From contig CM060734.1 of the NCBI GenBank assembly GCA_030704615.1, positions 26,784,001 through 26,848,000 of the forward strand: a stretch of DNA of 64,000 nt. Direction: 5' to 3'. Made by a program: the position numbers and the translations under genes. The stretch comes from Takakia lepidozioides (lineage: Eukaryota > Plantae > Bryophyta). A model generated the notes under the pieces. It had not been told where the DNA came from. It saw nothing but the letters and a program-made list of their open reading frames with translations, and did no database searches. Positions within the stretch are counted from its first letter, which is position 1; every line of letters starts with the position of its first letter. Of the stretch, positions 17,108 through 44,431 are shown one piece after another.

Positions 17108-19352
17108 GTAAACTAGCCAAAAGAAGAGAGGGCTCAGGAACCGAGATAACCTTCATGATGTCCACAGTGGCTCCAGCAGGCCCATGTGAGAAAGTAGAAC
17201 AACAAGAAAACATGTAAAGGGCCCATGGGAAAAAGTAGGACAAGAAGTAACTACTTTAGGAAACATAAAGCGCCATCCAAACGCAGGTAGGCTGGCGGGC
17301 ACTTGTTGCAAGACAGGAGAAAAAAAATGATTAATTACTTCCCTGGTAGAGAGAGAGGGAAATGAAATGGTGCTTTACAACGTCCGCGGAGAGAGAGAGA
17401 AAAAAAAATCTGCTGCCTGTGAAATTCATTGGTGATGTCTTCTTTGGGGCATGGTACTGTTGCGGACAACCTTGGAACCAGCTGTGACAAGTGTAGCTTC
17501 GTTAAGGGTATCTTGTCGGCAAATGGTCTTTATTTTCCAAACACTAGTAGGGCCTGAGCCATAGTTTGCTAGTGTCTAATGCCCTAGATAATTGTAAGCA
17601 TGGCTCCCCCCTTAACCCAATCAGGATTCTTGAAATGGTTCCTTTCGTGCTGGTGAGACGATGTATATCCCGCCGAGTCCTGGTATTAAGGTTAGTGCTA
17701 TTTGCTAGTGGAAATTGGCATCAGTACCTGTCTCTTCCTGTCTCTTTGTTGGAAAGTGCCGTTACAAGTTGTTACAGAGTTGCAGCTTCAACATTCTAAC
17801 AGACACAACTCTTCGTATGCGATACAAAAAATCACGTACCCATTGGTTGTGTACCCATTGGACTATCTACTCAGTTGTGTAGCTATAAAGAGAGCTGTGT
17901 CTCTCACAAGTAGAACACATAGAGACAGAGACAAAGAGAGGGATGGGGATATATTTAGTATGAGAGACTTTCTATATGATCAATAAAAGTATGTAATTGT
18001 TGTTATAAATGATCTAGGTTCTGCATCGAATGCTCCACTCTTCATAGGTAGAACCATTAAATCTATCATTTTCTCTCAAGTCAGGGGTATACTGACTATA
18101 TGTAATGGCTTGAGCATTCAAACCACCACTAGTAGTACCTGAAGCACTACTTGTACCAGCAGGGCCACTTGCATTTGTGTTAGCTGTTGACATTATGTTG
18201 ACTCTTCTCTAATTCTTAGTGGACTCTCATGTGTCTCAATGTGACAACCTTGTCAAGGTGGCCCTGATACCATGTGAAAATTGTACATATAATTTGCTCT
18301 CCGATAGGGATGATGATACTGAAGCATCGGTTTCATGGTGCACTGCCTTGCAAATGCAATGGTATCCTCCTTCATCAATGGCGAATTTGTGACTGCTCGC
18401 TTCACATTGGAAGCGAATATATGATGGTTATGTGACAGAATGGCTTTCAAAACCACATATAGGGTGCCCGATATGTTATATACACTATGGGAATCCAAAT
18501 GGTTTGCTTTGAAGGGAGTGACCTGGCCGCGCATATATAGTATCTGTTTTGTTTTTGCTGAATTAACTATCTTGGCCGCGTGGTCCAAGGAGGCGAACCA
18601 GAAGGAGACGGGTGGCAAGCGGCCACTGCATAGGAGTGGCCCAATACAATTATAGTGGCTGCAGCGATCTAGGTTTGTGGGTGAAGGCTCGCACACTACT
18701 TAGGCCAAGCGGCAAGATCTGACTGGCTATGGTGGAAGTTGACATCTTGGGTAAGCTTCGATCCCAGAACAGCAACTAGGTTTGAGGAATCACGTACTAC
18801 AGAATCCAACAGATTGTCAGATTGTTGGGGATGCATGCCGAGTTGTTTAACTGCAATAGGTTGTGGGGTTTTAACTTTGAATTGCACACCATGGAGTGGA
18901 TCGAGGGCAGCTGTGAAGGAGCTGCGAGGGTCAGGGAATGGATTGAATCTGGTGAATGCGGATAGAGCTCTGTAGATCGTTTGGGTCGTTCAATCGTACA
19001 GCAGGGGCTCTCACAATAATCTGGGAGAACAGTCATGGGGTGAATGAATTCACATGCTCTGTGGAGCAACGACAGTCACATGTGGATGCCATTGTTATAT
19101 TAGGGTTTGGTCAGTGGAAGGAGGCTGTTTACTTCTGCATGCTGAATTTGCTGGAGTCTTAGTCATTTTTTGCTGCAGCACTATCCTGCATTTTTCAGTG
19201 CTTCCAAGACTCCCAGTCTGGGCGTCATGGGACCATTAGCTCGCTTTACATGGACCACAGGATGACAGCACCATTGTCAATTCGACGGGATTCTCAGTAG
19301 CTTGTATCTTAGGGATCAGATACATGTGGTGTTTCTCACTAGGTTTGCCATC

Positions 19353-22300
19353 ATGACAGACTTGAAAACACGGCTGCTACCTCCACGACCTCTCCCTGCG
19401 GGTCCCTCAGAGGTTGCAATTCGCCAATCTATTCCTGGCAGACCCCTTTTCCAAGGCATGGATGTATCTGGTTTGAAAAAGAGAGGACAGGGAGTCCGCT
19501 CGTGGATACGGATAGATACTGCTGGGAATACACAGGTTCTAGAGGTAGATAAAGTCACCATAATGCGGCGCTGTGATTTGCCAGCTCGGGACTTGCGCCT
19601 TTTGGACCCACTCTTTGTGTATCCCTCTACAATTCTTGGCCGAGAGAGGGCAATTGTGGTGAATTTGGAGCAAATTCGTTGCATTATCACTGCAGACGAA
19701 GTGCTCTTGTTGAATTCGCTGGACAATTACGTTCTACAATATGTGGCTGAGCTGCAGCGGCGACTTGTCGTAAGGAATGCGTCAGATATCGCAGGGTTTA
19801 AATGGAGATCGCCAGGAGCGCAACTAGTCGACGGGCATCATCGTAGCATGGATGCTTTGCAAGGGGACATGCAAGAGGACCGCAAGCGTGTAGTGAATGA
19901 TGCGGACATGTTTAGTGGGTCGTCTGCTGACTACCTCCCATTTGAATTCCGGGCTCTTGAAGGTGCTTTGGAGGCTGCATGTACTTTCCTGGACACACAG
20001 GTGTGTCCCTTCCCTTTCTCCATGTTTTCCCCCTTTCGCTCCCCTGTCCTCAACAAACAAAACTTGCCATCTGATTGGATATTTTGGCAATGAGTGGTTA
20101 GAATATAAATCAGGTAGAATTTGAAAGCCCTTCTGTTCGTAGGAGAAAGCTATAACCCTAGCGCCCGAAGAACAGTGTGATCCTTTCGTGATGAATCACT
20201 CCGTCTTTCCCTGTTTACCTCAAGAAGCCTTTGGCCACCTTAATAAACATGCAAGGCCTTAATGAGACGATTTGAAGTCCTTCATCCAGCAAAAACAAAT
20301 CAAAGATAGTAGACCGCATGCCGCAAAGACAGTAAGTACACTTTATCCGGTGGCTACAATTCAGGTGGTGTCCACCAGTTGCCTCTTCCCAGATTCTTGT
20401 CACTGAAGTTAATTTGCATGTAGCACATCACTTTGTATAATTAAGACAAGTGGATCATTTAACCTGGTCTGCTTCAATGAAGGCAACGGAGTAGCTTTCT
20501 GCCATGTCTCCAATGTGGAGCACATACGTGGTTCCACTTTTGGGGCTACATGCCTGTCCAGGTTAGTGCTGGTTGGCTTCAGAAATGCTGAGGTGACAGC
20601 ATTCATTCTCCATAGAGAGAAATGCAGTAATGACTATATCAGGAACTTGCAGCTATGCAGACTGTAGCTAACCGAATGAGGCAAAAAATTAGGTTAGAAA
20701 AGGGGGGGGGTGGAGATGAGACGATTAGGGAGGAGAACGGGGGTTTAAGAGAAATAAAGGATGTTTTATTCACGGGGTACGAAAGAAAGTGTCATGTGTG
20801 CTGAAACCTGTTCTTGTGGTTGTGGGTCTGCTTATGGAGAATGGCAGGCAACAGAGTTGGAGGAGGAGGCCTACCCAGTGCTGGATGAGCTGACATCCAA
20901 AATTAGTACCCTTAATTTGGAGCGGGTTCGGCGTCTCAAGAGCCGTCTTGTGGCATTGACGCGACGTGTGCAAAAGGCCAGTCTCCCTCTCTCACACAGA
21001 AAGAGAAAACCATTAAGGCTGCTGGTTGCTAGGCTGAGGGTTTAAGGCTATGCTAACCAACCGAGTACATCAGCATCTCAAAATACTTGCACAAGCAAGA
21101 AGATGTGAGGAAGAAGGGTTTTTCCTCAATGTTTGTTGTTGGGTTGGTTACGCAGGTGCGCGATGAGATTGAGCAGCTCATGGACGACGATGGTGATATG
21201 GCAGAGATGTATCTTACTGAGAAGAAAGAGCGGATGAATGTCCCCTATTTGGAGAGACAAACTTCCTATGTGAACTACAGTGCCATGGGCGCTGGGGGTT
21301 CAATGTCGGCACCAGTCTCTCCGGTCTGTTCGCCCACTATGGGTGGCCGTGGCCCTTTGGAAACACCTTTGGAAAGGTCGTACAGCCTTGCAAGGTCTCG
21401 ACATGAGAGCCGAGTTAGCTCGCAGGCAGAGGAAGATAGAGTGGAGGAGCTTGAGATGTTGCTGGAGGCCTACTTTGTGGTGATAGATGGCACCCTCAAC
21501 AAGCTGACTTCAGTATGTTTCTTAATCGTCCTTTTTTCATTCGTCTATCCAGTCGTCTGTCCAAACGTGTGTGCATTCGTGGTTTTCCCTTCAGATCATT
21601 TCATTTGCTCTGACTAACCTTGTGAGCTGCCTGGTATTGAATGTTGTGTTATGGCAGAACGGCAGCAAAGTGCGGACTAAGGTGGCTTATAGGGTTTGGT
21701 GGTTAGGCCCACCCTGAAAGGGGCAGTAGCGGAAAGGCAAAGTGGCTCTTAGTTACGCGCCAGAGTCTTCTCTCCCTCTCTCTGTTTGGTGGATGTAAAC
21801 ACCCCATTATGCATAGTCTAAGGGCATTAAAGGAGGTCTTTGAGAATTTTTCCGTTTGGATACTTCAGCTGTGAGCTCCCTTGTGACATACTCATTAAGC
21901 AAGAGCTGGAGGTACTCCATGGCAAGCAAAAATCAGCGACACCCCTCACTACCAAGTTACAGCTCCATTGAGACACCTTTCTCATCCTCTGTGAGGCTAG
22001 AACCGTATAGTCCAGTTACTTCTGTGCACCTCTCTGGGAGTTGGTGTATGGGCTCATGTAGCCTGAGGATGAGACTTGCAGATGGTAAAAGATGCAGCAC
22101 ACTGGACACCTTTGGTCTGCTTGCGCTAGCGGGAGATTGAGGTTGAAGAACATTACTTCTACTACATTTCCCTATTTAAGAGGCAGCCAATGGACAGAGG
22201 TGTTCAATTTGTACCAGGATCAGAGATGCCTTTCTGCGTACCTACATGAGCCTCTACACCTTGAAGGATCTCCTGACAGTGGATTGCAGTTTTCTGGTTG

Positions 22301-23810
22301 TGGTGTCTGGTTTCTGGGGCCTTTGTCCCATAAGCTCTTTGAGCTTCCTGTGGACATTACTTTGTCTCTTTCTTTGGTTTCTGTAGGCCTACTGTTTGTT
22401 TTCTCTGATTGTACCGTGTTGTTTTCTATTGTGTCCTAAGGGCCTCCGGTGGATGTAGTTTTTCTTCCTCTTTGATAGCTTCTCTTCATTTGCTCTTTAG
22501 TCCTTGAAAGTTTGTCCTCTTTCCCCTCAGCCCTTCCCTTCCCTCTCTCCCAATCTTTCTGAACCCTGGCTTCTACCTCAGGCATCCAGGCCTGCGCCAT
22601 CTGGAATTGTGTTGCTGTGATCCCAGGCAGCCAGGCATGCTGCAATTGCTGTACCCTGTAGAAGTGTGTACCCATTTATTAATACTTATCTTCATTGGAG
22701 TGTCTCAGACATTGTCTATGTTCAAGATGGTGGAAGGACGGAATTAGTTATCAAACTATGGGCTTTCATAGATGTGAGAGGCCCTCCACACAACCTAGGT
22801 TTGAGAAATCAGAGAGCTCCACATATAGGGGCCCAGCAGACACCCCAAGACATGCAGTGTTTTAGCAGCTGCTGGACCTCTCTCCGGGTAATCCAATTCC
22901 AGGGTAGGCAGGCTATTAAAAGGAGAACAGAACTCTTCGCGGGGGATCTCGGGTTCTGCTTGTGGCTGATCGAACATGGTTACTTCTGACAATTGAGTAA
23001 ACGCTTGTGTTTCAAGATGTTTCTACATGATATTTCTTGGGTTAATACGTCGACTGTAATTGTCACTCTTACTGGAAATATTACCAAGGTTTGGGGTTCA
23101 TTGATCATCCAACAGCATGGCTTGTGTTTATCAGTGCAATCATGCTGTAGTCCATGCAAACAGTTGAGCTGACTTAGATAGACTAAACTCTTTGTTTGGG
23201 GACTGAATTTTACAACAGGGTCCCCTTTCTTTGGTGGGAAGTGTAAAGTGATCGGTGACATTGAGTCTGTCCCTGTTTGTCTCTCTCCTGCTCTTGTATT
23301 CCAAATCTAATTTTAATTTAGCTTGTGGGACCTCTGGCACCTTTTAGTAGCTTCTTGTATGGTTGGGAGGAAGTCAATGTTGAGAGTATGTCCTGACACA
23401 GGAGTTTTTTTGGTGGATGCAGTTGAAAGAGTACATTGATGACACTGAAGACTTCATCAACATCCAACTGGTAAGAATTTGGTGCCATTTTGATCTCTGT
23501 TGTTTGTAAGCATGGTTTTAGGGTAGAGAAGGGAGGTGGAAAGACCTGACTATTGGCTGTTGGTTCATCTTTTGTCCAGGACAATGTGAGAAACCAGTTG
23601 ATACAGTTTGAGCTATTGCTGACGACGGCTACGTTTGTAGTGGCCATTTTTGGTGTGGTGGCGGGCATATTTGGCATGAATATTCCTATCGCCTTGTTTG
23701 ATGAGCCATGGGTATTTAAGTGGGTCTTGATCATTGCAGGAGTGGCAGGCCTTTTTATCTTTTTAGCCTTCCTGTGGTTCTTCCGGCAGAAACGCTTGTT
23801 GCCCTTGTAA
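19353..23810 (+). CDS. MRS2: MRS2/MGT (CorA-family) magnesium transporter, 5 coding exons: 19353-20000, 20848-20976, 21156-21512, 23423-23470, 23580-23810 (~470 aa)
   Basis: Motifs: LPARDLRLLDP..ILGRERAIVVNLE, LPFEFRALE, VQK|VRDEIEQLMDDDGDMAEMYL, ELEMLLEAYF, EYIDDTEDFINIQLD..RNQLIQFEL, and the GMN motif between two hydrophobic segments. All exons join in phase 0. Confidence 0.95.
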
Positions 23811-24261: not shown

Positions 24262-27200
24262 TCACGAGGAGATGGATGCATGGGGCATTGAATCATCATC
24301 AATAACAATAGTCACTGGAGTGGATGTGGCATTTTCAGGTCCAGACTCATCATCCTCGTCGTTCTCACTACCATAAGTAAGCAAGGCCATGCTTCTTTCT
24401 ACCACCGCCCCCTTGCCTTCTGCTTCTTTGCCTGTGCTGCCGTCTTCAACTTTCTCCTCTCCCATCCTTCTCAATCCCTCTCCTCCCTCTTCCTCTTGAT
24501 CTTGATCCATTGTGTTATTTGATCTTCTCCGTTTCGTTTGGTTGTGGAGAATGGAAATTTCATTGCGCTTCATTTTCTGGCCCTTGGTACCCACCTCCAC
24601 CCTCAGCAGTCCTGCTTCTTGCTTGAATTGATAGGGGGCCCGGAAGCAGAATAATGAGAGATTAGTGATCTCGATAACTTTATCGGTTCTCCTGGATCCC
24701 ACAGTTATTAAAGGCTATCAGTAGGAGTGAAGGAAACTGACAGAGAGAAACTTGTAATCGATGCACAGTTACTAGTGGAAATCTGCAGCCTGACCTCCTA
24801 AAGCCAGATCAACCAGATGTGGAATTGGGAACCACAATCTCTCCAAAACAGGATTTTGAGTAATAACGTAAACTTGTGGCCCTCTAGTTCTTCGGTGTGT
24901 GAGCCAGAAATTGTCTACATCTCTCATGGCACAACTGTTTACGCCTTTAAAGGAATACCCTTTCCTTGGCCCGATAGAGTGGTCATACACAGACAGCTGC
25001 TAGAACTATACTGCATGTGCTCTTAATTTAGTGTACACTAACGTGTGTATAATGAGAAAAGAGGCTGGAACAAAGATGAGAGAAACAAACCGATATGTTT
25101 CTGCCTCAGATGTTTTTTGCATGAGAAGGCATCGTGCATAGAATCCCTCATGGCCTGGTTTTGCTGATTCAAGGCTTTGCATACCAATTGAGCTGTCCAC
25201 CACATACTGCCACCGAACAATACAAACTTTATGATGTACTCACCTTCTCTTCATGCCGGCTCACTCTTCTTAGCATTTGGAAGGCTTTGGCACTGATGTT
25301 GGCTTCGCCAGTATCTGGTTGCCTAGAATGTGCATCTCCTGTTCCAACAACCTTTAGTACACAACTGTGTTGCTAACCTGTTGCAGGGGCAACTGCCAAA
25401 TTTTATAGCCCATTCATACTAAGCTATTGCAAGTAAGTGCAGATCAAGGTGTACAGCTCTCACCTCAACTCTCCTCGCAGAGGTCACCTATCAAATAATG
25501 ACTAGCTTATATAACTACGGGCCTCATCATGGATCCAATATTTCTACTATGCCTTCAACATTTTGATTGATGTTTGGAGGCTTACCACAAAGAATGGACT
25601 CCAGATTTCGTGACTGTAGACTGTCCACACTTCATCATTTCCAGGATAAATGAAGTACTTGTCTTGTAGTTTTACAAAAGTGGTCACTCTGTGCAAGAGG
25701 CACATGAAAGTAAGCAAGGCAAGAGAGAGCTTCTTCGGCTGTTAAATAACTCCCTCCCAGACACACATCAGCACTCCGAAGAACTTAGGTCCTCTGCATC
25801 AGTTGTGGTCCTCTATGCTGTGAGAAAAGAGCTAAGAGAAAGAATGTTCCCAATGTTGAAGAGAGAGAAGCTTTGGGCTACTACCCCCTTTTGGTGGTGG
25901 CCACTATATGTCCTCAAAGTTGGACCTCCCTTGCAAGCTAAAGCATTCACGTACTCCCGAGGGCACCGTCCCTTAACATGCTAACGCTCCTCCAGCTGAT
26001 TGTGAGGTTTAAATCAGCAGGGTGTGAAACTCAATCCAAGATACCCGCAGCAATTGCACAAACTGGGTGTTTTGGTGTTCAGATAAGGCTTGGCGAATCC
26101 ATCATAATAGAAGAGAGAATGTGCTCATAAGACATATCATCATAGAAAGAGAGAGAGAGAGAGAGAGAGGGGGAACAACGTGGGATGTTTTTTGAGCAAC
26201 ACATCCTTTACCTTTGAGAGAAGGTAACCCAAGACACCTGGACATCTACCTCCTGTCTCAACTCCAAAAGTCCAGCGCCCCTAAGTGAATTCCACTGATC
26301 TGCTTCACCCTTCCGATAGGGAGGAGTCATCTCCAGATAACGCCTGCCACATTTTATGTATTTGTAAAACTGTGTTTGTTGTACCCTTGTGGGCATTGTC
26401 TGGATGAAGCAGGAAGGAGGAGGGGAACAGGAGGCAGAGAAAGAGACCATCATGGAAGTCTTGCTCTCCCCCATGGTACAAAGAAAGGAAAAAGAAAGAT
26501 ATAATGTCCACAGGAAGGCAGAACAGGTTATTCTTGTGTTATCGCAGAAACTTACAGCCCCACAAGCTTGGTAGTATAAGGGCACACTGGAGAAACCTTA
26601 TTGAACACATAATGCTTTTACCCATTCTATGTGAGAGCCAAAAGCAAACCAGAACCGCTTGCCCCCTCTCTTGAGAAAAGCAATCCACGAAGAGTTCAAG
26701 AGAGGCTAACTCACATTTCAATGTATAGAGGGTGCTTCTTCCCAGCCTGAGTGGTGCGTGAGAACCTGTCCCCAGACCTCTGCAGAATAAGAGCATACCA
26801 ATTGGGGTCGCTCATGCTGGTTGTACAATGCCCACAACTGCCAAAGTCGCAAGATTTTCGTCAAAAACTCTGCCCATAAATCTCATCTGGAGATTGCAAC
26901 AATGCGGCCAGATGTTTCACCCAGTTTTATGAAAGGATTAGAAGTCAAGGGGAGCTCAAAGAAGGCCTTTGCCGGGAAACGAAATTTGTTCCTGATTTCA
27001 TCATGATGCAGTCATCTGACTTGTAAAGTGAATGAGAATAAGTAAACAAATTCATGACGTCCGCAGGAGAGCACAGGACGCGCAGAGGGCCCATATGACA
27101 CAGTACAACGACAGAGAAGATAGAGAGCTAGAGAGAGAGTACATCGTATGATTCCATAACAGAGCATTCATTCTCCTTGACTGGTCCTGAGATGCAGACG

Positions 27201-28904
27201 GGATGGCCTAGAGCACGCACTGAGCCCTTTAGAAGAGGGCTTGTGAGATACGCAATAACCGGCACCTATCCCACACACACAGCGTGAGAAGGGCGAGCAA
27301 ATTACAATGATGCCCACCAAACAAGTTAGGCCTCTGTGACATCTCTCTCCATTTAACTTGATTTGGGCAGTTGAGTGTTTTTTCTTTGTCCTGGCAGAGC
27401 AGTCAGTCTGCCAGGAAAATTGCATTTGTTCAGAACCCCACAAATCGACCCCATTGCACCTTGGCAATCATAAGTTACATTTGAGAGAATGAATCATCTT
27501 CTTCTCACAATCATAACTAGTTTTAGGAAGAGACTGCGGATTGCAAAACAAATCAGTATAACAGCCATCGCTCTACATCATTGGGGTTAAACCTTAGATT
27601 CCATTGAGCGTCAGCATCGCTGCGGAATGCGGGCAAATTCTGCACTAGCGGGGCTCATGAGTAGCGACCAATATGGTACGAAAGACCTCCTCTCTTCCTG
27701 TCAATCTCAGCGAAATCTTCTTTCAATCAATCAAATTCTCAGCAGGGAAGATGAGACTAGCATGGGTCTTACTGTGAAGGTGTTTCCCAGCAACATCCAC
27801 CTTATACTGGCCCGCAGTGGCTCCAGTGATGGCGACTCCAATGGGTTACTCCGACCAGCTTTCCCTCGACCCTTTTGTGGCGGCCGTGGACTCTCTACAA
27901 CATCCGGCCTGTGGCAACGTACAAACAACGATGGTTGTAAGCAATGTACTCACGTGTTGTAGACCAAGTTATGAAGAAGTTTCTTCATTTCTGAGCTTCC
28001 CGTGGACTTCATGAGAGTGTACCAGTTGAAGGGATGATCTACAGTTGCAGCGCTGCCACAGTTAAAACATAACCATCTCTGAGCTGATACTCTAGATAGG
28101 AGGTGTAGGACTGGGACGATTCTTACCTGGAAGATAAGTTTGCATTTGTGAAATTGTCAGCTTCTTTAATGAGCACATTTGTGTGATTGGGGGGATATCC
28201 CATCACCATTTCCAGCTCACTGTGACTAATGTATCGCAGCTCATTTGTGCCAACTTCCATCACCAGCTCCAGGTTGGTCGTGTTGCTCTTGTAGCAGTTG
28301 TTAGATAGAACAACCTAAGGAACATCAGGAACAGAGTACTGAATTAGAAATGGCACTTGCTTAGGTGAGAGATAGGAGCTTAATTTGCAACATTTGGCAT
28401 TATCGTGATATGTACAATATCCAAGATTCTCTATCTGATTTTAACGTGAGCACCTTGAGCTGGGCACAGTGTCGATGTACTAACTAGTTCCACAGATGGT
28501 AGCTTTGCTCTTCTCCCTGCAGTTTGAGACAGTCTAGAAGTGTCCCGAACATTTGAGCCAACCGTCTCATGAGGAGGGAAGAGCCGGAAGGGAATATGTG
28601 TTACACAGTCCACAGAAACCAGGAAAGTATACTTCAGTTAGATAATACATCAAGGGGAGAGGAAGATACCCCAGTTTTCAGTTCAAGGGGGATGGCGTTG
28701 TGGAGGCAACTTTCGAGCGATGTCGACGGGTGGTCCCTCACACGGGGAAGCTTCGGGGGGTGGGGAATGTTCGTCCAATATATTCGGCGTCGTCGAGTTG
28801 GTGTGAGCTCAATAGAGTCGATTTCAATAGGCTGCACTCTCAGGTACTTGGAGATTTCGTCGCGATCGATCCATGACATTGAAGCCACGTTCTCAACCAA
28901 AAAC
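24262..28904 (-). pseudogene. DNMT3: DNMT3-like cytosine-5 methyltransferase C-terminal half + DUF3444; exons 28904-28670, 28314-28127, 27908-27773, 27265-27143, 26837-26715, 26343-26212, 25688-25586, 25206-25091, 24691-24262
   Basis: MTase motifs: VI FLVENVASM, VIII TRRRRIYWTNIP, ELEMVMGYPPNHTNV, X RWMLLGNTFT|VPVIAYL. DUF3444-like: LWALYN..WYALI, YLE, FSQR, IYPGNDEVWTVY. Introns are GT-AG and phases agree except for +1 nt at the G4 run 26804-26807. Motifs I and IV were not found. Confidence 0.85.
26147..26168. repeat. (GA)n microsatellite in DNMT3 intron
   Basis: Run of GA repeats. Confidence 0.85.
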
Positions 28905-29979
28905 CTGCAGGGCAAAATTCAATCTGTCCAACTTATTGCAGGCAACTAACAGTCGAGGTCCAAACATTTGCTTTTCCTCATTTCTTCAAGGTGCTTATTA
29001 AAGCTTCTGGCTCACCCTTCTTGTCACAACCAACTGCTCAAGATAAGTACTTAAGGTCCTCCATCTGTCTCAGTCCAGCATACCGATGGTTGACATCAGA
29101 TACTGAGCTTATGCGATTGCTGACAACAGAGCTGGCCCTCAGCTGGCCCCGCCTTCCGTGGATCCATGTAATAAATCTTCTTCTCATAGTCAGTGGACGT
29201 AATATTAGGTAGTAGATGCTTCCTCTCCCTCTCTTTTGTCTTCCCAAGTGGTAAGTTACTAGTTACGATACATTTCCCGCTTAAAACTAAACTGTAACCG
29301 TGCATGTGATGGATACTAAGTTGAACACGCACAATGTTCTATGACAACATTCGTGATCTATCAAACAAATGCAGGAAAAACTGGATTCGGCTTTTAAGCT
29401 CTGCAGAATTGATGTGACGCTTAATCAATCTATGAAGCAAGACGTTTGTTTTGTCGCAAGGCCCCGGCGCTGGTGCTTGGTACAGTTGGAAAGCCCTCAA
29501 CGGGCTTGGTCTCAGGATTTTTGGACCTGCGGTGTGGGAGATGTGGAATTCCAAGTACTTTTGGTCGTGGTTTCTCCAGTGAATGCATTTCTTGAAATTC
29601 CATTCCATTCCATCCACGAAAACGTATTAAACGTGAAAACAGAAACTAACCGTGCTTAATATCCAATCAAGACCAGAACGGCAAGAGGAATCGAACAAAC
29701 GTACACATCCCTGTGAGAAGCGAAACCGCAACAAAGAGCCAATCTAATAAAAAACTCAACAGATTTCGCCATCGAAACCAATCTATGTAGTGCTAATCTA
29801 GCAAACATATCAGACACTGACTAGTGGATTTCGCAATCGAGACCTGTGTTGGGTGCGGGATCTCCAAGATATTTGCTGTCAAAACTCTTAGCTCCCTTCT
29901 TTGGTGAACGGAATGGTTTAAGGTATGCTCATCGATCTAACACTCACGTCAGCCGTAGGGTCGATGCAGGCGTCCTACA

Positions 29980-32900
29980 CATCATTTGCAAGCATACTGG
30001 AGACCTCGTTGAAGCTTAAGGTAGGCGCATGAACCTGTTCAGCTTGCTGACTGAGCTATAGCTTCACAAGAAGAACATAGTACAAATGCTTACAGGCATT
30101 ATATGGGCCTTTTTTTCTCTCCACCGCCATGAAGTCGGGGCAGGTGCATGCTGGCAACTGAGAGATTGTAATGTTGTAGGATGTATTCTTAGCTGACGAT
30201 CCAGCAGTAATAATAGTGTAGACCCTCCCAAATCCCGATGACGGAATGTCTCGACTGTAGCTGATTGTTGCATAAAGGTTCAATGCACTTCCCATCCGCG
30301 TTTTGTTTTGAGCACTGGGTGTCTTCTTTCGACGGACAGGCTGACCCCACCGTGTAATCCCCATCCAGAGGTCGTTCATTCCTCTCGATGTGAGATTCTC
30401 TCGCTACAAGTCTGAAACCAGCCTTAGTGAGATAATCAACTTCAACCTGGCTTAGCAGTGTTCCTAGAGCTACACTTGGTGGTGATGGCTTATCCAAACA
30501 GGAAGACATTACTCCACCATGCACACAGTTTGCAATGTCATCCGAACACATCCAGAAACTATGTTTCGGTACTTGCTGTTTATACAATGAAGGAAGTAAC
30601 CTCCCGACAAAGACAGGAGCAGCCACTCCCCGTCCTTTCACCCATCCTGGGTTCATCCTGGCGTTAATGGATTGATGGCAGATACGTCCCGAGTCCAACC
30701 TCACTGCCGAACATTTTCCTTGGAAATTCTCTATCGTTCGTGCTATCTTCCAACATGTGTCAGATACCCTGGATTCAAGAACCGGTAAACCATCCTGGTA
30801 CGGCAAAGAATACTCTTCCAAATCCATACTTGACCTCTGTGTTAAGGGGACCTCCCAATCCGCATCTTCATCTCCCGATATTTCATCTGCAAGGGACTCG
30901 GTCTGGTTTGGGGCCGTCACATACGATGTAGAGCGTGTACCAACTGGAGTTGATAGAGAGGGTACAACAATGGGGGTGGGAGAAGCGCCGACATTATTTT
31001 GGCCGAAATCGTCCCTCTCTCCCGGCTTATTTGAAGATGGAGCATTGGACTCATCAGGTGATGAGGCCGGGGATGGGGAAGATCCAAACACCGGTTGTCG
31101 CATACCGGATAGATATCCCGAGAGCCGTCCACCGCGACGTCCTCTTACACGTGGACCTGTATGGAGATTGAACTCCGGCCTCCAAGAATGTTGTGCCTCG
31201 TCGAATGAAAACTCCAGAACATCTGATCGTCGAGGCTGCTTCGTTGTCCTCAGATCGCCATCCAATCCAACCCGCATGGACTCGAACGGTGACCCGCTGA
31301 CTACTTCCTTCATCGCCGCTGCTTTCTTGAAAGTGCTTGGACTCCTCGACTGTGCCCTCAATAAAAGCTCCTCCTTATCAGGGCCTAGGCCCTTAAATTC
31401 ACCCGTCCTAAACTTGAGGATGTTGCACTGTTGCATAATCGATCGAGTTATGTCATCGGCAGTGGCGGTTCCAAGATCGGTCAGCCCACTCCCGGAGCTT
31501 GCTTGCCAACTGCTATCCACAGCCTCCGACAGATTTGTAGTTGGCATTGATGTATCAGCTTCCAAACTAAATCGCTGTCACAACAAGAAACATTAATTAG
31601 TAAAGGTCACACCAATCCATAGATTCAATATCCACTCGGAACAATCCCCTGAATTCCAATCCGTCGAACCATCCATCCTCTAGCAAGTGAAATGTTTCTA
31701 GATCCTAATGGTGTCCAGTCGAAATTCTTTCGTAGGCGAAACTTTCATATCAATTGTATTTCACAAGCACATAAAATATATGGATGCATCATTTCGCAGG
31801 CGACATTATTCCTGCAAATTCGGATCTCTTTTTAATGCGCTATCTTTTTCGTTTGCAAAACTTAAGAAGGAAGGGATCGGCTGTTTATTGTTAGCAACAC
31901 GTTGGGATATACCAACGTGAGTAAGTCCGTTCTTTGCAATCATATTGACGTAACTGATATTTGAAACTTACGTGACGCATGTACTGTCCCAAGTGACGGT
32001 ACCGATAATGCCACCAGGCAAGCCATGTCATCAGTGCTTTCTGATCCTTCAGACTTGTTGCAGCTCCTGAAGATGACCACCAGGCTCGAATACTGGAGAA
32101 CAATGCTTCTGCAGCTATAAATGTGGTCGTGTCTTTCCAGGAGTTTCAAATCTCCACATGTTGTGATCTCAGGCCCGGGATAATATGTCTGGGTAGTGTG
32201 TAGTTGCAAGCTCTGTGCCCAATGGAACCCACAAGTTCGCTCTCTCCCATCTTCAAGTGGAGTCTGGTCGTCCCCATTCCCGTAGATCCGGCGAACAACG
32301 TTCCAATTGGCCCCTGCGTTATCTGCCATGAATCCTGCAAATCTTGGTAGCCGTTTTCCCATCCGTTGCATTGTCTTGTTGATGTTCTCCCACAGGAGCA
32401 CTTGTGAATCAGCATCCTCCGCGACCATCTCACAAATTGCCAGTGTAAGTAGCTTCTGCATTCCTTCGTGGTAGACATGACATGGTTTTGTACTCCATCC
32501 CTTAATCCGTTTAACATGATCGAAGACGACCCACGACATCTCCATCTCACCCCCAATGTTCATGCTATCCACAATCTCCACTGCATTTCCCGGACCTGAA
32601 GTGGACATCTTGAAGACGTAAGGTCTGTCCTCATCAGTCCCTTGGCCCGGAAAGTGACTTCCATGGACAAAGTCATAGTTGCACTCTTTTTTTAAATCCA
32701 TCAGAGCGCGAAAATCGTCTCCTTTCCCAAACTCCTGCCCGCTTGTTTTCACATGGTTTACGTAATTTGGAGACGACAGGTAAGATATATTTTCCAGCAA
32801 TTTCAAAACATCCGCATCCTTCATTCGTGAACGCTCCTTGCCCTCTTTCACCATGACCTCTGCCATGACTGCCTTATTGCACACGTTCAACTGCACCTTC

Positions 32901-33987
32901 TTGGGAGACAGAGCTGGATGCAATTTCACCTCCTCTCGGATGAGCAATCGTGCGTTGATTGCCTTCTCTCGGCTCCCTCCATCTGCAAATGGATGGTGAT
33001 GCTCTCCCAAATGAACAGCACACCGACTCGTCAAAATGTCACCAACAATATAAAATATTCGAGCAAAACAGGTGGAAATACAAAATGGGGGTGCCTTGCA
33101 AATGGCACAATAAAATGAGTTTTTCGGCACGGAAGTCTGCTCTCGGAAAACCCTCTTTGAGAAGCCTTTCCAGTGCTTCTCATTGTGAAACCCATTTCGA
33201 ATGTAATAGGGACATGCGGTGTCGAGACAACGCATGTGGCCAACAGAGCGGACATATCGAATAGCTATACCCTTTGGGACCCTAATGCTAGTGGTCTTTG
33301 TCCTTGTCCAGCAATGACCGTCATGTTTCCGATCCATCCCAATAAGACTTCCCTCAGCTGACCTAACAATTGGGGCAGGTGGAAGTTCATAAATACATCC
33401 CCATTAACATCTCCTGGAAGATATGTAACTTGGTGAACTCCGATGCGTTGAAGGTCAATACCACATAATGGATTACGGGACTGTTTGGAGGATTGGACAT
33501 GCGTAAGTATATCCAAACTTGACGTACCTGCTAGGACGCCAGATGATGAGCCAACACCAGGACTCTCCTGCACTCGACTGAACTTCTGTGTCGAACAAAT
33601 GCTTTCAACCTCGTAACAATCATCGTCATCGTCATTGTCATCTGACTCATTTGTACCTGATGAAAGCTCAATATGTGCTTTTGAAGAAGAAGGTATGTAC
33701 TCGCATTTCACTGCGCTATCTTGCATTGTCACTCTATACATGAATCGTGACACACAGCATTTCCAGAACATCTCAGTGCATACACGCGATAGAAGCACCA
33801 ACCTACTGTGCAACAACACTCCTTGGTCATCTAAAACATCCTCCTCCAAACTGAGCGTACCTGTATTAAATCCAAATATCAACCGCAAGAAACTCTCCGC
33901 AACCAAACAAAATCCGTCTGTGGCAGGCAATTGAACAGACCCAGACAACTCTCTACTGAAGATTGTAATGAACCGTGTGCTCTCCAT
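29980..33987 (-). pseudogene. MULE/Mutator-type transposase with GCM-like zinc domain and C-terminal SWIM finger, frameshifted
   Basis: GCM-like: DGHCW..GHMRC..CP..CAIC..C..R..HLGEHHHP. Predicted catalytic triad: FDHVKR, FMADNA (followed by CGFH), PTTNLSE. SWIM: PACTCPDF..CKHLYYV..HAPTLSFNEV. Frameshifts near 33390, 32190 and 30380; probable intron at ~31970-31570. Confidence 0.8.
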
Positions 33988-34178
33988 TGTGGTTCGGAGA
34001 AGTGCTTTCGGAATTCCTCTAAATAATATATACTGAGAATTAAAAACGTGTGTGGGCGACGCTATAGCGGCGTCATTAATGTTTTAACATGAGTAGATAT
34101 TACTATGGCATGTATCTTATCGAGAATCAAACTGACAACATGTGATAATATTTTGCAAGCGAAACATTACATCTGGAC

Positions 34179-34992
34179 CAGCGTCCGGGAAATAATTTCA
34201 TTTGAACCAGCCAGTAGCCGCTCATTCCCAGCAGCAATCGGCTAAGTGGGTTGGGCAGTCGGTTGCTGCCCCTTAGTGGTAACTATACCCGGTCAATTTC
34301 CGGAATAAAATCTTTACAACCGGTAATATTCCTAATGATTTATTTTGTGTTCAGCTATAAATCCGGCCCTTATAAATATCAACTGGTTGACAACACAAGT
34401 GTCAAATGCACAACAATAAGTAAATAATAATAATAAGAAATAATCACAACCAGTTTTAAGCAATTCAAACAAGTGAAGAACATTGTATCCTTATAGAAGT
34501 TGGACCTGTCAATGCCTTCAAACCACATGGAGGTCAAGAATTGAACCCGCGTGGACAGGTGAGCTGTGATAGCAGGCAACGAGTGCAAGCAGGCGTGGGG
34601 CTGGGGCTGCGAGAGCAACGTCCAGACTTAGTAGGGTTTGCCCGTGGGCCGCCCTCTTGAGTTCAATATTTTTTAACGTAAACGCCCTTCCTCGGATGTA
34701 ACCCGGCCTAGCACGTTGGAATTCTGCCATGTGGCAGACTTCGACGGCCATTTCCGTTTTTTGTAATATAAAAAGGGCCGGAATCCGTCCAGGCCTTGCC
34801 AACTAAGGCAGATTTCCTGTCTGTAATGAAATGGAAAGGCAAATATCCTTCTTAAAAGTAGGGCACCCGGTTGATTTCCGCTTCGGCCATTTTCCCCCTC
34901 GGATCCATTTCCTGAGGTTTCATATTTCATTCGGAAATTCTGGAATTTAGTCGGCTAGCATGTAACTGGCTGCCGGTTCTCCCCGGACGTTG
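34179..34992 (-). mobile_element. Non-autonomous hAT element (MITE), copy 1
   Basis: TIRs cagcgtccggg...cccggacgttg; 8-bp TSD atctggac at 34171-34178 and 34993-35000. Confidence 0.92.
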
Positions 34993-35541
34993 ATCTGGAC
35001 ATAATGAAGTCCATTTTTTATGCTGTGTGACGGTCACAAAATTCTCGAATGAAGCCAACTGTCAGTAAAGAATACTTGTCAGTCACTAATATGTGTCAGT
35101 CAGGAATATTTGTGCCGTTTTGTCGGGATTATCATTCTTCGCATGCGAAATAAGTATTTTCCCAACTCTATTGAGAATTTATCTGCTAGACATTTATTGA
35201 CATTGCGCCAAGTGGAAGGTAGAAGCTCGTGTCTAATACACGTTGTCATCTGTAATCTCAGCGATTGATCAAATCAAATACCCCAAAATGAAGTCATATA
35301 ATCCACAACATGATAGTCCATCGAAAGGAATAAACTATTTCAAAATTAACCGTTCCGCATTTGAATGCAACAGCAAGCATCTTACCATATTGAAGACACC
35401 GATTTAAAATAACGGATTGCTCTTTAAAGCTTATTAAAGTTCTCATCAAAGCTCTTAAAGAGATGATGTACGTCTGCTTGTAAATTATGATAACAGTTAT
35501 TACTCCTAAATAAATCTAACTCGTGAATCCAACATACACTC

Positions 35542-36352
35542 CAACGTCCGGGGAGAACCGGCAGCCAGTTACATGCTAGCCGACTAAATTCCAGAATTTC
35601 CGAATGAAATATGAAACCTCAGGAAATGGATCCGAGGGGGAAAATGGCCGAAGCGGAAATCAACCGGGTGCCCTACTTTTAAGAAGGATATTTGCCTTTC
35701 CATTTCATTACAGACAGGAAATCTGCCTTAGTTGGCAAGGCCTGGACGGATTCCGGCCCTTTTTATATTACAAAAAACGGAAATGGCCGTCGAAGTCTGC
35801 CACATGGCAGAATTCCAACGTGCTAGGCCGGGTTACATCCGAGGAAGGGCGTTTACGTTAAAAAATATTGAACTCAAGAGGGCGGCCCACGGGCAAACCC
35901 TACTAAGTCTGGACGTTGCTCTCGCAGCCCCAGCCCCACGCCTGCTTGCACTCGTTGCCTGCTATCACAGCTCACCTGTCCACGCTTCAATTCTTGACCT
36001 CCATGTGGTTTGAAGGCATTGACAGGTCCAACTTCTATAAGGATACAATGTTCTTCACTTGTTTGAATTGCTTAAAACTGGTTGTGATTATTTCTTATTA
36101 TTATTATTTACTTATTGTTGTGCATTTGACACTTGTGTTGTCAACCAGTTGATATTTATAAGGGCCGGATTTATAGCTGAACGCAAAATAAATCATTAGA
36201 AATATTACCGGTTGTAAAGATTTTATCCCGGAAATTGACCGGGTATAGTTACCACTAAGGGGCAGCAACCGACTGCCCAACCCACTTAGCCGATTGCTGC
36301 TGGGAATGAGCGGCTACTGGCTGGTTCAAATGAAATTATTTCCCGGACGCTG
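35542..36352 (+). mobile_element. Non-autonomous hAT element (MITE), copy 2, opposite orientation
   Basis: TIRs caacgtccggg...cccggacgctg; 8-bp TSD atacactc at 35534-35541 and 36353-36360. Nearly identical to copy 1 (3-bp length difference and a few SNPs). Confidence 0.92.
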
Positions 36353-37029
36353 ATACACTCAGTTAATAGATTTCGCATGCGAAATATTTCTGTAGATACA
36401 TATTGTATAGTTAAGTCTTTGGTACTTTCAAGATGGTTCAGGTTCCAAATTGTCTTTCCTAAGGGCGCCGAGCTTGCAAGGGATCTTTGATCGATTACCG
36501 TAATCCCCACGATAATTGGTTTCACTTAGGTGGAGGAGCCTTCGTGACGGGGCCCACTGCATTGTCCCCACGATTCCTCCGGATTCTGGAATTCTCTAGA
36601 ATTCTATAGGATTACCTGTTGCGCCATTTAGGTAATTTATCTAGATGTCCAGATCGACGACAGATGATTTATGTTACGTCGTATACCAAATATTGTAACG
36701 TCTGGTCAGCTGCAACTTGAAAGCCAGACGATTTGTACAGGGGTGACCACATACACTATTTAGGAACCAGAGACTCTCGTATAGACGAGTCTCATTTATT
36801 TATCTACGTTTTTTTGGAATTACAGGTGTCGTTGTGATGTCGTTTTGGAGATTTGGATGTGGTTTCGGTTTTGCTGGCAAAAAATTTCCTTGTAAATCAA
36901 TAAGTTCCTCGAAATCTGCGGTCATTGTCACTAACCCTAAACTGCAAACCCAACAGAACACACTCAAGCCTTGAATGGCTAATTTCGCTGGTACAATTCC
37001 TCGGAGATTGAAGAAGTGTCGAGGTTCTT

Positions 37030-37670
37030 AATGTGTTTCGTTAGCGAAATGGGAATCCAAGTGCATAAGAAGTTTAGAATTTCGGGTTCAATGAACATTC
37101 TGAAGCCAAACGAAACGTGTCAAAAAAACAAAGTTTTAAACGCAACACAAAACTCCAAAGAAACCAAAGATAAGTTTAGAAAAGTGACTTTGACGGCTAA
37201 GTTTCGCTAGCGAAACTCGAGAACATATTGTACAAACCGCATCCAAAACTCCACATAAACCACATCCAGAACCAAAATGAAACTATGTGGTCGAGAAGTC
37301 CATTGTTGGTGAAAACAAAATCACCTTGCCTTTTTGACTTCAAAGCCAAAGATTCGCCAGCGAAACTCTAGAACCTATTCTACTAACGCCACCGAAAACT
37401 AAACAGAAACCAAAACACAACCGCAAATGAAACTCTATTTTCAAGAAATCAAGTGTCGGTGAAACCACAACTCATAGTTTCGCCAGCGAAACTCTAGAAC
37501 ATATGCTCCAAACGACATCCAAAACTCAAGCATAACAGATAAAAATGAATTAAATAATGAATATCCATTTTTGAGAACTCCAGTGTTATCCATGTACAAT
37601 ATCGAATTCGAAGTATTGTTGAACGTGAAAGTCAGTTTCGCCAGCGAAATTGAAGAACACACTATACGAA
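37030..37670. repeat. Degenerate ~125-165 bp tandem repeats anchored on tttcgc(c/t)agcgaaactc
   Basis: Anchors at ~37036, 37202, 37353, 37478 and 37636. Confidence 0.65.
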
Positions 37671-38249
37671 CGAAATAGAAAAGTCACATTCAAAAAATAT
37701 ATATATATATACATACTAGGCCGCAATAGTCCAATATTCGATCTTCTCTATTTATTTTTCTCTATTGTCATTCCTCAAGCGAAATGACATTTTATATATT
37801 GTTTTGTTGTAAACCGAGAAAACTGGATGCGTGTGAGATCATCAAACGAAGGAGATCTTTTATGAAAAACCCTCATGTTGTCTTCGTCTTTTCGCTAGCT
37901 AAATGGTAATTGGTGGATGGGATTTTCGAAACATAAATATTTCAATTCACAATTAACCGCAATAGCAGTTATGTGATATTAGTAGGAAAACATTCGAGAC
38001 TCTCGATATTCCTGTGGTGCGCAAGCTAGACTCATGTTTTGTTGATCATTGATATTATTGTTTTATACAGGAACAACCCATTATGCTAAAGCTCCATTTC
38101 GTCAGCAATAATCTACCATATTTCGCCTGCTCAATGATTTTACGGTCCTCATAATTATTGCTATATTTTCCGTGGCTACAGAATTCCTCATTGAATAGCT
38201 CTCCATTTTTCATTTCCATTACTCATGATTCTATTGAGACCGCTTGAGT

Positions 38250-38560
38250 CTACTATCGAATAGGCCGCAACATGTCCATCTGGTTGGGTAAAGTGGCGTC
38301 GAACCGGATGGCGTGCTGCCACCGAAATCTGATAAAATGACATGTTGCGACCCCATCCATAACGTAAACGATTTTGTGTGCCGCCCTACTGCACGTCCTA
38401 ATCAAAGATAGTATGAATCATAATGGCACAATGAAAAAATTTGTGTGTGGAGAATTGTGCTTTTCATTCCACCTCCAAATACGTCAACTTTGGCATGAGG
38501 CATCCATTATTTCTTTTTTACCTTCCCTCGTAGAGATCATTACGTTCAGTAAGGTATTTT
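38250..38560 (-). pseudogene. Possible Ulp1/C48 protease-like remnant
   Basis: Fragments NFFIVPL, KIVYVMD and TQPDG/CCGLF in broken frames. The catalytic His context is not clear. Confidence 0.25.
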
Positions 38561-40269
38561 GAGATTACTTCATATGTTAGGAGGGAGTCCTCTAATCTCC
38601 AATGCATTGTGTCTGTCGTTTAACTCTTTGGCAAAAGCGGGCTTAACAGCATTTCCTTCACACTCGTGGGAATTGTTGGATTGTCGAACGTTTCTCATTG
38701 AATGGTTCTTGGGTTTGCGAATGCACAATGTCAGGTCTCTAGCTTTGGGGCAATTTAATGACATGTTGGAGTTTTGTCAAGAGATGACACCTTCACACTA
38801 ATGAGTAGCCGATACCTCTTACTCCATATAAGTCCGTACAATAACAGCGAGAGCTTCTATAAATGATTGTATTGCCGTTGAGAGCTCGCCTTGATCTGTG
38901 CTCACGTTTATATTTGGGCAGGAAGGAGATAGTACAGGTAGCCTGACAATTTTCGCAAACGAAACCATTTAAACAGGTAACATCAACCGGTTTCGGGACC
39001 GGTAACATCAACGGGAACCTAAACCAACCCGTGCCGAGGTGCCTCGAATAATGGAGATGAACGAAAAAGAAACGGTGTCCTGACACATTTTGCAAACAAA
39101 ACTACTTTAAAGCGTAACGGTTACAAAATACTAAAATCCTGACAACATGTTTCAAGGCCCCCTTCACAGCTGGAAAACATTTCAAAAAAGCCGCATTGTG
39201 AATTGTTCACTGTCATGGAGAAATACAGTCAAACGCGACTCCGTTTTGGAATGTTTTATAATTTCGCATGCGAAACTAGATCTTGACTATAAAACTTCAA
39301 TTAATTTCAAGGAATACACTTCATTCCATTGTCGAGGTTTTCTATAAAACCACAGTTCAATCGTTGACGGTTTGACGATTTGTTGACGATTTGACCTACA
39401 GTTTGGAGGATTTGACCTAGAATTTGGTCTGAAATAATATTTCGCATGTGAAACATTATTCAAAAAATGAAAATAGAATAAAGAAATTAATTAATTTTAA
39501 GCTTATTATCTATTTTTCCACGTTTTAGATAGGGGTGGTTGATATCTCCCTAAGTGGTAACACCGGTTCGGTAAAAAATAGTCGTGAAGGATCAATTTTG
39601 AATGTTAAATCCCCTTCTTAAATAAGTCGAAAATCAAACAGAATATACTTTTCGTAAGCGAAACTTGAATCCTCCTCTGCGTTTCTCTTTATGGAAATGC
39701 GTTGTCTGCGGTATAGTGTTTGAGTATTCCGAAACGAGAATAATATCGAACAATATCTTCGATTCCGTAGGCTACACAAATTGCTTTGTGAAATAAATGT
39801 GTTAAAAGTGAACATTGACACATTAATAGTTTTAATTAGTGTATAATGGCCGCAATCATATGTCTCCAAGCTGGGCACGGCCAATGAGGCTTAGTGCCTC
39901 TTCCTGAATTCATCGAGTACCGAAATACCCAAGACATTACAATTTAAGTCAATTAAAGACGACAACAAGAGAACGGAAAACATGAATTCATATAAAGTAT
40001 ATTAACGGATCAATCTGAATTTCGTGAGCGAAACAAAATGAACAACTCAATCAAGCTAAGAAAAAAAATGCAGATCTCAAATTTACAATACGACATCGTC
40101 AATAGAAAAACAAATTATTATTATAACTTCAATCGTGGATTCAATAGCGAGACATAAGAAAGACCATAAAATTCAAGCCGACCCAGCAGAAATATCCGAC
40201 ACCTAGCTGAGGACGCAAACAAATTCAAAACATATATACATATATACATATAAATGTAGTACCTTATGT

Positions 40270-43200: not shown

Positions 43201-44400
43201 ACTTTTGTCAAGCTAGAAAAGAATCTGATGGTTATGCCTACCATTGGAGAGTAATATAATTAATGAGTGGTAATGGAATCAGCATAATATTCTTGAAAAT
43301 CATTGCCCACTCATAGATGAAGAGACTTTATAATCGAGTCATCTCCAATGCCTGAGCGCCTCCACATGACTCGCTTTGCGGCCATCAAGGTGGAGAGATG
43401 GCAGATCTGTGATCACGGACACTTTACAAATATATGTGTTTCGCTTGCCAATCCTTGGAGAACGATGATGGACAATTATTGTTGTGTTGATGGAAACCAA
43501 CACTTGCGGTGATGGAACTTATTGGTGCGAGGATTTGAACTTAGTACAGAAATGGTATATTATATGTATGTTTATTTAATATCTTTAATATACTAAATGT
43601 TTTTACAAATTCTATTTCATTATATTACGTTATTGGTTTATGTATTTAGTTCTATGATTAACAATGGAGGATTCCCAGGATTGAAATAGAATAGGAGTTT
43701 TAGTAGACGGAATATACCGGAAATATTTTGTGGTTTATGGCTCATAGACCGCAATATAGGTCTCTTGCTTTATTTGTTTTTAATTTGGCGGGAAAAGGGA
43801 AGGAAGCGGTTAAGAGCCCTTCTGGATCATATATTATCAGAACATATCTCCATTCTAATACCTTATATCTTTTGATATTAGAATATCATTATATCGTATG
43901 ATCTAGTTATTTTTTACCATTATCTTTTAATGTATTTTTGGGCCTTTTTCCTTTTTATAAATAAAAGAATTATGTAATCTTATTCATAAGTGATATTAAT
44001 ATCGGTAGAATACAGACATAAATGGTATCAAACTTGATATATCTATGAGGATGTGATTGGAAGCAAGATTATTTTATTTTTATTTCATATTTATTGTATC
44101 CAAATAAATCTGAATCTTGATACGTACTATGAGAAATGTTTTATAGGATATCGAGAAATATTACGTAATTAATATTAATATGAGTTTATGTGTTTTTAAT
44201 ACTTTTCCAGAAAAAGGGAAAGAAGCGTTGAAGAGCCCTTTGCCAAACGTATTTTTATCATAACACAGAACGATACTAATTCTTCATTATATCTTGTAAA
44301 TATGATCTAGTTAATTGTTTCGTGGTATTTAATGTCTTTTCGGGGCCTTTTATTTTTTAGTAAGTTTAATATTTACTTAATCTTAATCATAAGTGATATA
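40270..44400. repeat. AT-rich local direct duplications
   Basis: atttgtagtag(g/t)tgtta..gatggatggg at ~40300, ~40730 and ~41550; 40770-40970 similar to 41730-41890; aaaagggaa(g/a)gaagcg..aagagccctt at ~43790 and ~44210. Confidence 0.6.
40972..41271. mobile_element. ~300-bp MITE with TA target duplication (Tc1/mariner-type)
   Basis: Imperfect 22-bp TIRs ccgtacttgcctatgctattcg / cggacagcgtaggcaggtacgg, flanked by TA on both sides. The paralogous empty site aagttcatac-ta-aataag lies at ~41881-41898. Confidence 0.75.
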
Positions 44401-44431
44401 AACATCAATATTATACAGTTACAAATAGGGA

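Follow-up and report, generated by a model that had tools for sequence, protein, structure and literature searches.

The window analysed here, a 64,000-nt stretch of the genome of Takakia lepidozioides (GenBank assembly GCA_030704615.1, contig CM060734.1, positions 26,784,001 to 26,848,000; coordinates below count from its first letter), contains part of a gene for a plant DNA methyltransferase of the DNMT3 type. Nine 3' exons are preserved in order, the exons for the start of the protein and for methyltransferase motifs I-IV are absent, a single frameshift interrupts what remains, and a diverged paralog yields spliced RNA. The locus is most probably an unprocessed, 5'-truncated DNMT3 pseudogene in a transposon-rich region bordering a satellite array.

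Exon anatomy and lesions of the DNMT3 remnant

The remnant was compared exon by exon throughout. Exon-wise tblastn with full-length relatives was the approach that succeeded, whereas Pfam applied to single open reading frames (ORFs) or exons did not recognise the methyltransferase exons and gave no more than a weak DUF3444 match on exon G (E-value 0.024-0.03). The queries were 14 plant DNMT3s, among them proteins from Calypogeia fissa (P0015), Ceratodon (P0176 and P0178), Marchantia (MpDNMT3b), Diphasiastrum, Selaginella and Ginkgo. The C. fissa protein and the 13 others aligned in nine co-linear minus-strand pieces running from 28912 to 24487 and covering residues ~165-640. The remnant (28904-24265, minus strand) is the counterpart of this part of plant DNMT3 and consists of nine co-linear exons:

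28904-28670, minus strand: exon A, motif VI (FLVENV) and motif VIII (RRRRIYWTN); starts at the acceptor AG at 28906-28905
28314-28127, minus strand: exon B, motif IX region (ELEMVMGYPPNHTN); from tblastn with P0015 residues 247-306 and splice sites
27909-27771, minus strand: exon C, linker and motif X (RWMLLGNTFT); from tblastn, alignment, acceptor and donor
27265-27143, minus strand: exon D, end of the methyltransferase domain (VPVIAYLTSPLLK) and linker; from tblastn and a paralog complementary DNA (cDNA) contig on 27155-27265
26840-26714, minus strand: exon E, start of DUF3444 (LWALYN..PNWYALI); site of the sole lesion
26342-26213, minus strand: exon F, DUF3444; from tblastn, a paralog cDNA joint at 26339/26714 and splice sites
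25689-25586, minus strand: exon G, DUF3444 (YFIYPGNDEVW); from the weak Pfam match, tblastn and paralog cDNA joints
25206-25091, minus strand: exon H, DUF3444; from tblastn and a paralog cDNA joint at 24690/25090
24691-24265, minus strand: exon I, end of DUF3444, acidic tail and stop codon TGA (24267-24265); from tblastn with P0015 residues 572-640 and the open frame 24714-24265

All eight introns read GT..AG with fitting phases, leaving 16 of 16 splice sites intact in the sequence, and five of the eight are backed by spliced RNA contigs of the paralog described below. No stop codon lies inside the exons.

The identity of the methyltransferase part is clearest in exon A. Its open frame (28918-28637) matches the catalytic domains of DNMT3A, DNMT3B and DNMT3C in the PDB across motifs VI-VIII (phmmer, E-value ~5e-7), and its identity to plant DNMT3 exons is 62-82% (62-64% to Calypogeia DNMT3). 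In a library of 1.84 billion proteins its best full-length matches were a 673-residue C. fissa protein and others that pair PF00145 with DUF3444. The borders of the exon coincide in protein position with those of Ceratodon exon 4 (residues 200-278). Farther downstream, motif IX (ELEMVMGYPPNHTN) and motif X (RWMLLGNTFT/VPVIAYL) align to the matching blocks of P0015, P0019 and P0020, motif X being divided between exons C and D (LLGNTFT in one, VPVIAYL in the other), while exons E-I make up the DUF3444 domain and are co-linear with the corresponding part of P0015, P0020 and P0185. The best full-length relatives are the Ceratodon proteins P0178 and P0176 (53-55% identity over the exons), followed by those of Diphasiastrum, Calypogeia, Selaginella and Marchantia (MpDNMT3b). 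Judged by its sequence, the remnant is a host-type, intron-bearing plant DNMT3, with methyltransferase domain and DUF3444, that lacks its 5' half.

Residues 1-164, which include motifs I-IV, have no counterpart in the whole 64 kb. In tblastn the N-terminal 200 residues of the 14 proteins matched exon A only, and a profile hidden Markov model (HMM) of DNMT3 N-terminal parts, run against all six-frame segments with filters off (--max), reached a best E-value of 2.1. Neither motif I (FxGxG, which binds S-adenosylmethionine) nor motif IV (PCQ, with the catalytic cysteine) was found in the 64 kb. Recurrent weak N-terminal tblastn matches at 50514-50633 were rejected, as they lie on the opposite strand inside a long interspersed nuclear element (LINE). 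The Ceratodon gene has its three 5' exons no more than 1.5 kb from the motif VI exon, and the intron orthologous to the one preceding exon A is ~250 nt long. The 35 kb upstream of the remnant hold only a transposase relic, a palindrome, AT-rich DNA, the LINE and satellite.

Within the preserved exons the sole lesion lies in exon E, where the C4 run at 26805-26808 is one base too long; the result is a +1 frameshift at the start of DUF3444 that cuts this domain off from the reading frame. Two tblastn pieces of exon E in different frames accordingly overlap at 26805/26806. The extra C is missing from the DNA and RNA contigs of the paralog, where one base is left out at 26804, and from related-species cDNA. 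Read data were also available as contigs of one DNA study of the same organism (containing 91-93% of the sequence words of the window), which were compared with 24401-30400. The frameshift is present in a contig of this run that shows 0 differences from the window over 24401-26834, although the run may derive from the sample behind the window's assembly and hence is not independent support.

The initial annotation of this DNA had described nine phase-consistent exons with motifs VI, VIII, IX and X and a DUF3444 tail, a first visible exon that begins at a splice acceptor, no upstream exon with motif I or motif IV, and only one lesion in the downstream exons. The homology searches, the PDB match, the profile HMM and the canonical splice sites bear out each of these descriptions.

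The transcribed paralog and the time of inactivation

Contigs of the DNA run are identical to the window over 24401-26834, 29074-29452 and 29539-30400. A separate 7.3-kb DNA contig of equal depth has exons ~85% identical to these, separated by introns that differ in length, and therefore represents a paralog. The RNA evidence consists of assembled contigs from two small runs, judged to be RNA. Two of these contigs (X6 and X7) contain exons only, at 84-87% identity to the window (14-37 letters different per exon) and without the extra C. Their joints coincide with the predicted splice sites, so that they derive from spliced RNA. At every listed diagnostic site the entire RNA depth shows the letter of the paralog. 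One RNA contig runs 839 nt further upstream of its exon A match and departs from the window precisely at the acceptor. This extension, together with the ~85% identity, indicates that the transcribed gene is the paralog, with a 5' part of its own.

In the two runs no RNA contig carries the letters of the window copy, and none covers 28905-30400, upstream of exon A, apart from a high-copy repeat. When protein collections were searched for the organism's own paralog with a profile of relatives and with separate exon rows, they returned other species only, at no more than 55% identity. Contigs L001-L005 come from relatives, at 72-75% DNA identity. The earlier proposal that a transposon had knocked out a silencing enzyme is overstated, given that a ~85%-identical paralog is transcribed and that its mRNA reaches 839 nt upstream of exon A.

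The differences between the window copy and the paralog retain the mark of a protein-coding gene. The 34 listed differences fall in 31 codons, 19 with synonymous and 12 with non-synonymous change, and are distributed 9:5:20 over the three codon positions. They give a rough ratio of non-synonymous to synonymous change (omega) of 0.19, an estimate from 34 of ~120 or more differences with synonymous sites set at 23%. Neutral drift since duplication (path omega of at least 0.55) is rejected, as 12 or fewer non-synonymous changes among 31 would arise with P ~0.003. Exon divergence from the paralog is ~15%. The low omega at this divergence, the lack of stop codons, the 16 intact splice sites and the single indel together indicate that the window copy functioned as a gene through most of its history and was disabled recently. 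Such a recent death explains the synonymous excess equally well without present selection. Of the two options offered initially, that the truncation is recent or that the remainder is still under selection, the former is supported and the latter is not required.

The following history would account for these observations. A host DNMT3 gene was probably duplicated, and the window copy would have stayed complete and constrained during most of the time that followed. Then, in transposon-rich DNA beside the satellite, a rearrangement would have removed all of the gene that lay 5' of the intron preceding the motif VI exon, with the +1 frameshift at the DUF3444 start gained either after or before this loss. 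The window copy would now yield no detectable RNA, and de novo methylation would presumably be performed by the transcribed, diverged paralog or paralogs. Both the order of these events and the cause of the truncation are reconstructed from the end state.

Several observations weigh against so simple an account. The region 26835-28600 is represented in the DNA run by short contigs only, at a depth of 48-68 against a baseline of 37, and with a few letters and small indels different from the window (-7 at 27019, +AG at 27129, +AA at 27272, +7 at 27825, and 27 nt in place of 27403-27551). Precisely these stretches of 26835-28600 are also the ones assembled in a low-coverage metagenome run, and the window-identical contig stops at 26834, 30 nt from the frameshift. 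The approximately doubled depth and the small indels suggest that a second, ~99% identical partial copy, comprising exons B-D with their introns, is present at another place in the genome. On either side, 24401-26834 and, the repeat at 29455-29567 aside, 29074-30400 are single copy in the DNA run. The history would therefore be more complex than a single truncation, and the second copy leaves a small probability to capture or transduplication, as it does to a more complex rearrangement. Furthermore, the breakpoint of the 5' loss cannot be placed to the base, motifs I-IV of the paralog are deduced from 839 nt of extra 5' mRNA, and omega was estimated from a part of the differences. Weak or tissue-specific transcription of the window copy is also possible, as contigs drop rare variants.

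The upstream transposase and alternative explanations

On the upstream side the remnant is separated by a short spacer from a decayed transposase gene, and on the downstream side it faces a magnesium transporter gene:

33936-29978, minus strand: decayed Mutator-like transposase gene, co-oriented with the DNMT3 remnant
33936-31951, minus strand: zinc-finger and core of the transposase, with frame breaks near 33380 and 32180
31577-30400, minus strand: Ser/Pro-rich middle ORF of the transposase
30355-29978, minus strand: putative SWIM part of the transposase, with a further frame break near 30380
28905-29977: spacer of ~1.07 kb between the exon A acceptor and the end of the transposase, consisting of unrelated or repeat sequence
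19302-23810, plus strand: MRS2-type magnesium transporter gene (Pfam MRS2-like, E-value 1e-13), with the GMN motif in the ORF 23553-23810

Homologs of the 465-residue transposase ORF share 35-39% identity with it, have no Pfam domain and cover 33936-31951 in three frames. At two homologous loci from other genomes (L008 and L009) a second ORF stands directly after the first; it matches 31577-29978 of the window in two frames and bears a putative SWIM finger at its end. The same two-part layout, a core ORF followed by a SWIM-ended ORF, occupies 8001-11810 of L008 and 8001-12187 of L009. In the window the putative SWIM motif (CTCPDF..x13..CKH) lies within 30379-30056, and the second ORF of L008 scores 17.8 bits against the Pfam SWIM model (E-value 0.0025), under the cut-off of 19.6.

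Assignment of the core to a family is less direct. The Pfam MULE/DDE family (PF10551) matched neither the window ORFs nor six homologs, a PDB profile search with the transposase family found no relative, and the AlphaFold model of the 465-residue ORF (11 sequences) had a predicted local distance difference test score of 36.6, too poor for a fold search. Protein-language features place the core with families of Mutator-like elements (MULEs; PF10551), with a top score of 0.94 and with ten of the ten best family-bearing matches in MULE or its clan; given the blank Pfam and PDB searches and the poor model, this placement is a lead and no proof. The family, unrecognised by the Pfam MULE model, may represent a Mutator lineage that is divergent and unannotated. 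The gene itself is a dead relic, its frame broken at least three times. Terminal inverted repeats bound neither the transposase nor the transposase together with the DNMT3 remnant; the sole significant inverted repeat in 28900-37500 is the palindrome at 34147-36388. Judged by the DNA run, the 3' part of the transposase has no further copy in the genome at 85% identity or above.

The spacer (28905-29977) holds no DNMT3 coding sequence according to tblastn and the profile HMM. It includes a 113-nt repeat fragment (29455-29567) with a depth of 60,585 against 37, equivalent to ~1,600 copies, the others of which extend past both ends. This repeat also occurs in RNA contigs and has no family in Rfam. 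A co-oriented transposase-like gene with a putative SWIM, ending ~1 kb upstream of the remnant as originally annotated, is confirmed by the homologs and by the motif in its last part, even though Pfam makes no MULE call. Replacement of the 5' half of the gene by this MULE, which had also been proposed, is not borne out, given the 1.07 kb of unrelated sequence in between, the lack of inverted terminal repeats and the three or more breaks in the transposase frame. Transposase and remnant are adjacent; replacement by that element does not follow from their adjacency. The dead relic may mark the type of event that removed the 5' exons, a role short of demonstrated causation.

Among other explanations, the DNMT3 piece could be cargo of a transposon, Pack-MULE-like or other, or a product of transduplication, the locus being one of several copies. 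The adjoining Mutator-like gene and the approximately twofold depth of the exon B-D region (~26835-28600), with small indels indicative of a second near-identical partial copy, are in keeping with this explanation, which is nevertheless unlikely. No inverted terminal repeats surround the transposase or the transposase with the remnant, the flanks are single copy apart from the 29455-29567 repeat, and the nine 3' exons are kept in order with host-type introns. The remnant and MRS2 are convergent, with their 3' ends ~450 nt apart, and such an ordinary convergent end argues for a resident locus rather than cargo; capture of DNMT3 by the element, as initially suggested, is not borne out. The long constraint (omega ~0.19) likewise suits a resident gene. 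It is somewhat less probable still that the remnant is not inert, either because a low-level transcript from or near the Mutator-like relic is spliced into 28904 and gives a short dead fragment (motifs VI-X) by which the active paralogs are guided or disturbed, or because the second partial copy reflects ongoing transposon-linked spread of DNMT3 fragments.

A related scheme, which extends one put forward at the outset, is that read-through from the transposase or a new promoter produces a truncated, catalytically dead DNMT3 that is still selected as a DNMT3L-like partner or decoy. Although the two genes are co-oriented, the acceptor and the downstream splice sites are intact and the changes are mostly synonymous, this is very improbable: the frameshift removes DUF3444 from the product, the transposase has at least three frame breaks, no RNA contig of the two runs represents the window copy or, the high-copy repeat aside, the interval 28905-30400, and the recent death of an intact gene explains the synonymous excess equally. 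An assembly artefact, in which the 5' exons were lost or the locus mis-stitched through repeats or through the near-identical second copy, merits equally little credence. Short-read contigs do break at 26834, at 29074 and at the 29455-29567 repeat, and the DNA run departs from the window at a few places in 26859-28569, but identical contigs span 24401-26834 (frameshift included), 29074-29452 and 29539-30400, and a 113-nt repeat is trivial for long reads. The least probable explanation is that the gene is whole, with its motif I-IV exons past the window end beyond the satellite and joined to exon A by a giant intron. The exon A acceptor is intact and only 35 kb of upstream DNA can be inspected; however, the frame is broken by the frameshift regardless, the orthologous Ceratodon intron measures ~250 nt, no RNA of the window copy was seen, and the intron would have to run through the transposase relic and the 2.2-kb palindrome and then through a LINE and upwards of 10 kb of satellite. 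A 5'-truncated, unprocessed pseudogene thus remains the best explanation of the locus.

Genomic surroundings and comparison with known systems

The arrangement of MRS2 next to DNMT3 is not kept in the relatives compared, since the genes for Ceratodon P0176 and Calypogeia P0015 have other neighbours. Upstream of MRS2 are a hAT-type transposase in two adjoining ORFs (1461-4270, minus strand; DUF659 and hAT dimerisation domain), a Gypsy-type integrase fragment (5767-6771, plus strand) and a tandem array of 51-52-bp units at 4657-5335. On the other side of the remnant, a near-perfect palindrome of 2.2 kb (34147-36388) begins 160 nt from the 5' end of the Mutator-like gene; its arms of ~850 nt are 98-100% complementary around a 549-nt loop, and each contains ORFs of 85 and 93-94 residues. 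A ParB-methyltransferase gene was sought beside the transposase and palindrome, where 36300-44900 holds no long ORF. The LINE (45133-51000, plus strand), with Exo_endo_phos endonuclease and RVT_1 reverse transcriptase in several long ORFs, stands between AT-rich DNA and satellite. The satellite has a 120-bp unit with higher-order periods of 240 and 480 bp and occupies 51442-52632 and 53663-64000, with a further stretch at 44431-44748. Its orientation is opposite on either side of ~53 kb, and it fills the last 9.4 kb of the window.

Plant DNMT3s of the PpDNMT3a/PpDNMT3b type have an N-terminal DNMT3 methyltransferase domain and a C-terminal DUF3444 domain (Yaari et al. 2019, PMC6453930). The remnant has motifs VI, VIII, IX and X followed by DUF3444 in the same order, and its introns next to the motif VI exon occupy the positions seen in the Ceratodon purpureus gene. 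Unlike these genes, it has no motifs I-IV and no protein start, carries a frameshift in DUF3444 and shows no RNA of its own. Exon number varies among the genes compared: the C. fissa DNMT3 gene (P0015; L007 10001-12022) is intronless, against 12 exons in Ceratodon and nine in the remnant. C. fissa also has a second, near-identical DNMT3 copy of 675 residues on another contig.

In keeping its introns and in being truncated, frameshifted and accompanied by a diverged expressed paralog, the remnant resembles other unprocessed pseudogenes. It differs from them in that part of it has seemingly been recopied recently and in having very few lesions for ~15% exon divergence, which points to a late death. 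The comparison with mammalian DNMT3L goes no further than that both are DNMT3 relatives unable to be catalytic. DNMT3L is an expressed and conserved protein with a full reading frame and defective catalytic motifs, and its C-terminal domain binds DNMT3A, whereas the remnant lacks the N-terminal motifs, has a broken frame and yielded no RNA in the two runs.

Comparison with mobile elements gives a similarly mixed picture. The upstream gene resembles MULEs in its zinc-finger N-terminus; its core is placed with MULE families by protein-language features, and it has a putative C-terminal SWIM of the CxCx(n)CxH form. Its homologs occur in multi-member clusters in other genomes. In contrast to MULEs, it has no Pfam MULE match and no inverted terminal repeats, its frame is broken in three or more places, and the 3' part of the gene is single copy. 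Unlike Pack-MULE cargo, the DNMT3 piece is not enclosed by element ends and sits beyond the limits of the transposase gene. Gypsy retrotransposons that carry DNMT3 have been described from Klebsormidium, and in the window, too, DNMT3-type methyltransferase sequence lies next to mobile DNA. The remnant, however, has eight spliceosomal introns and a DUF3444 tail and lacks an in-frame protease, reverse transcriptase or integrase; Pfam detected no reverse transcriptase or integrase between 24000 and 34000.

On its own the locus is of little importance. DNMT3 paralogs are common in plants, and loss of PpDNMT3a had no global effect on methylation (Yaari et al. 2019, PMC6453930), so the loss of a spare copy is unsurprising and fits the published evidence that plant DNMT3 paralogs are partly redundant. 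As a caution for annotation, DNMT3-like sequence may belong to a host gene or to a pseudogene, and introns, DUF3444 and neighbouring domains help to tell these apart. Read as a truncated pseudogene, the locus would record that an early-diverging moss-type genome has recently lost one DNMT3 duplicate where genes meet satellite, and that another copy is still expressed there.

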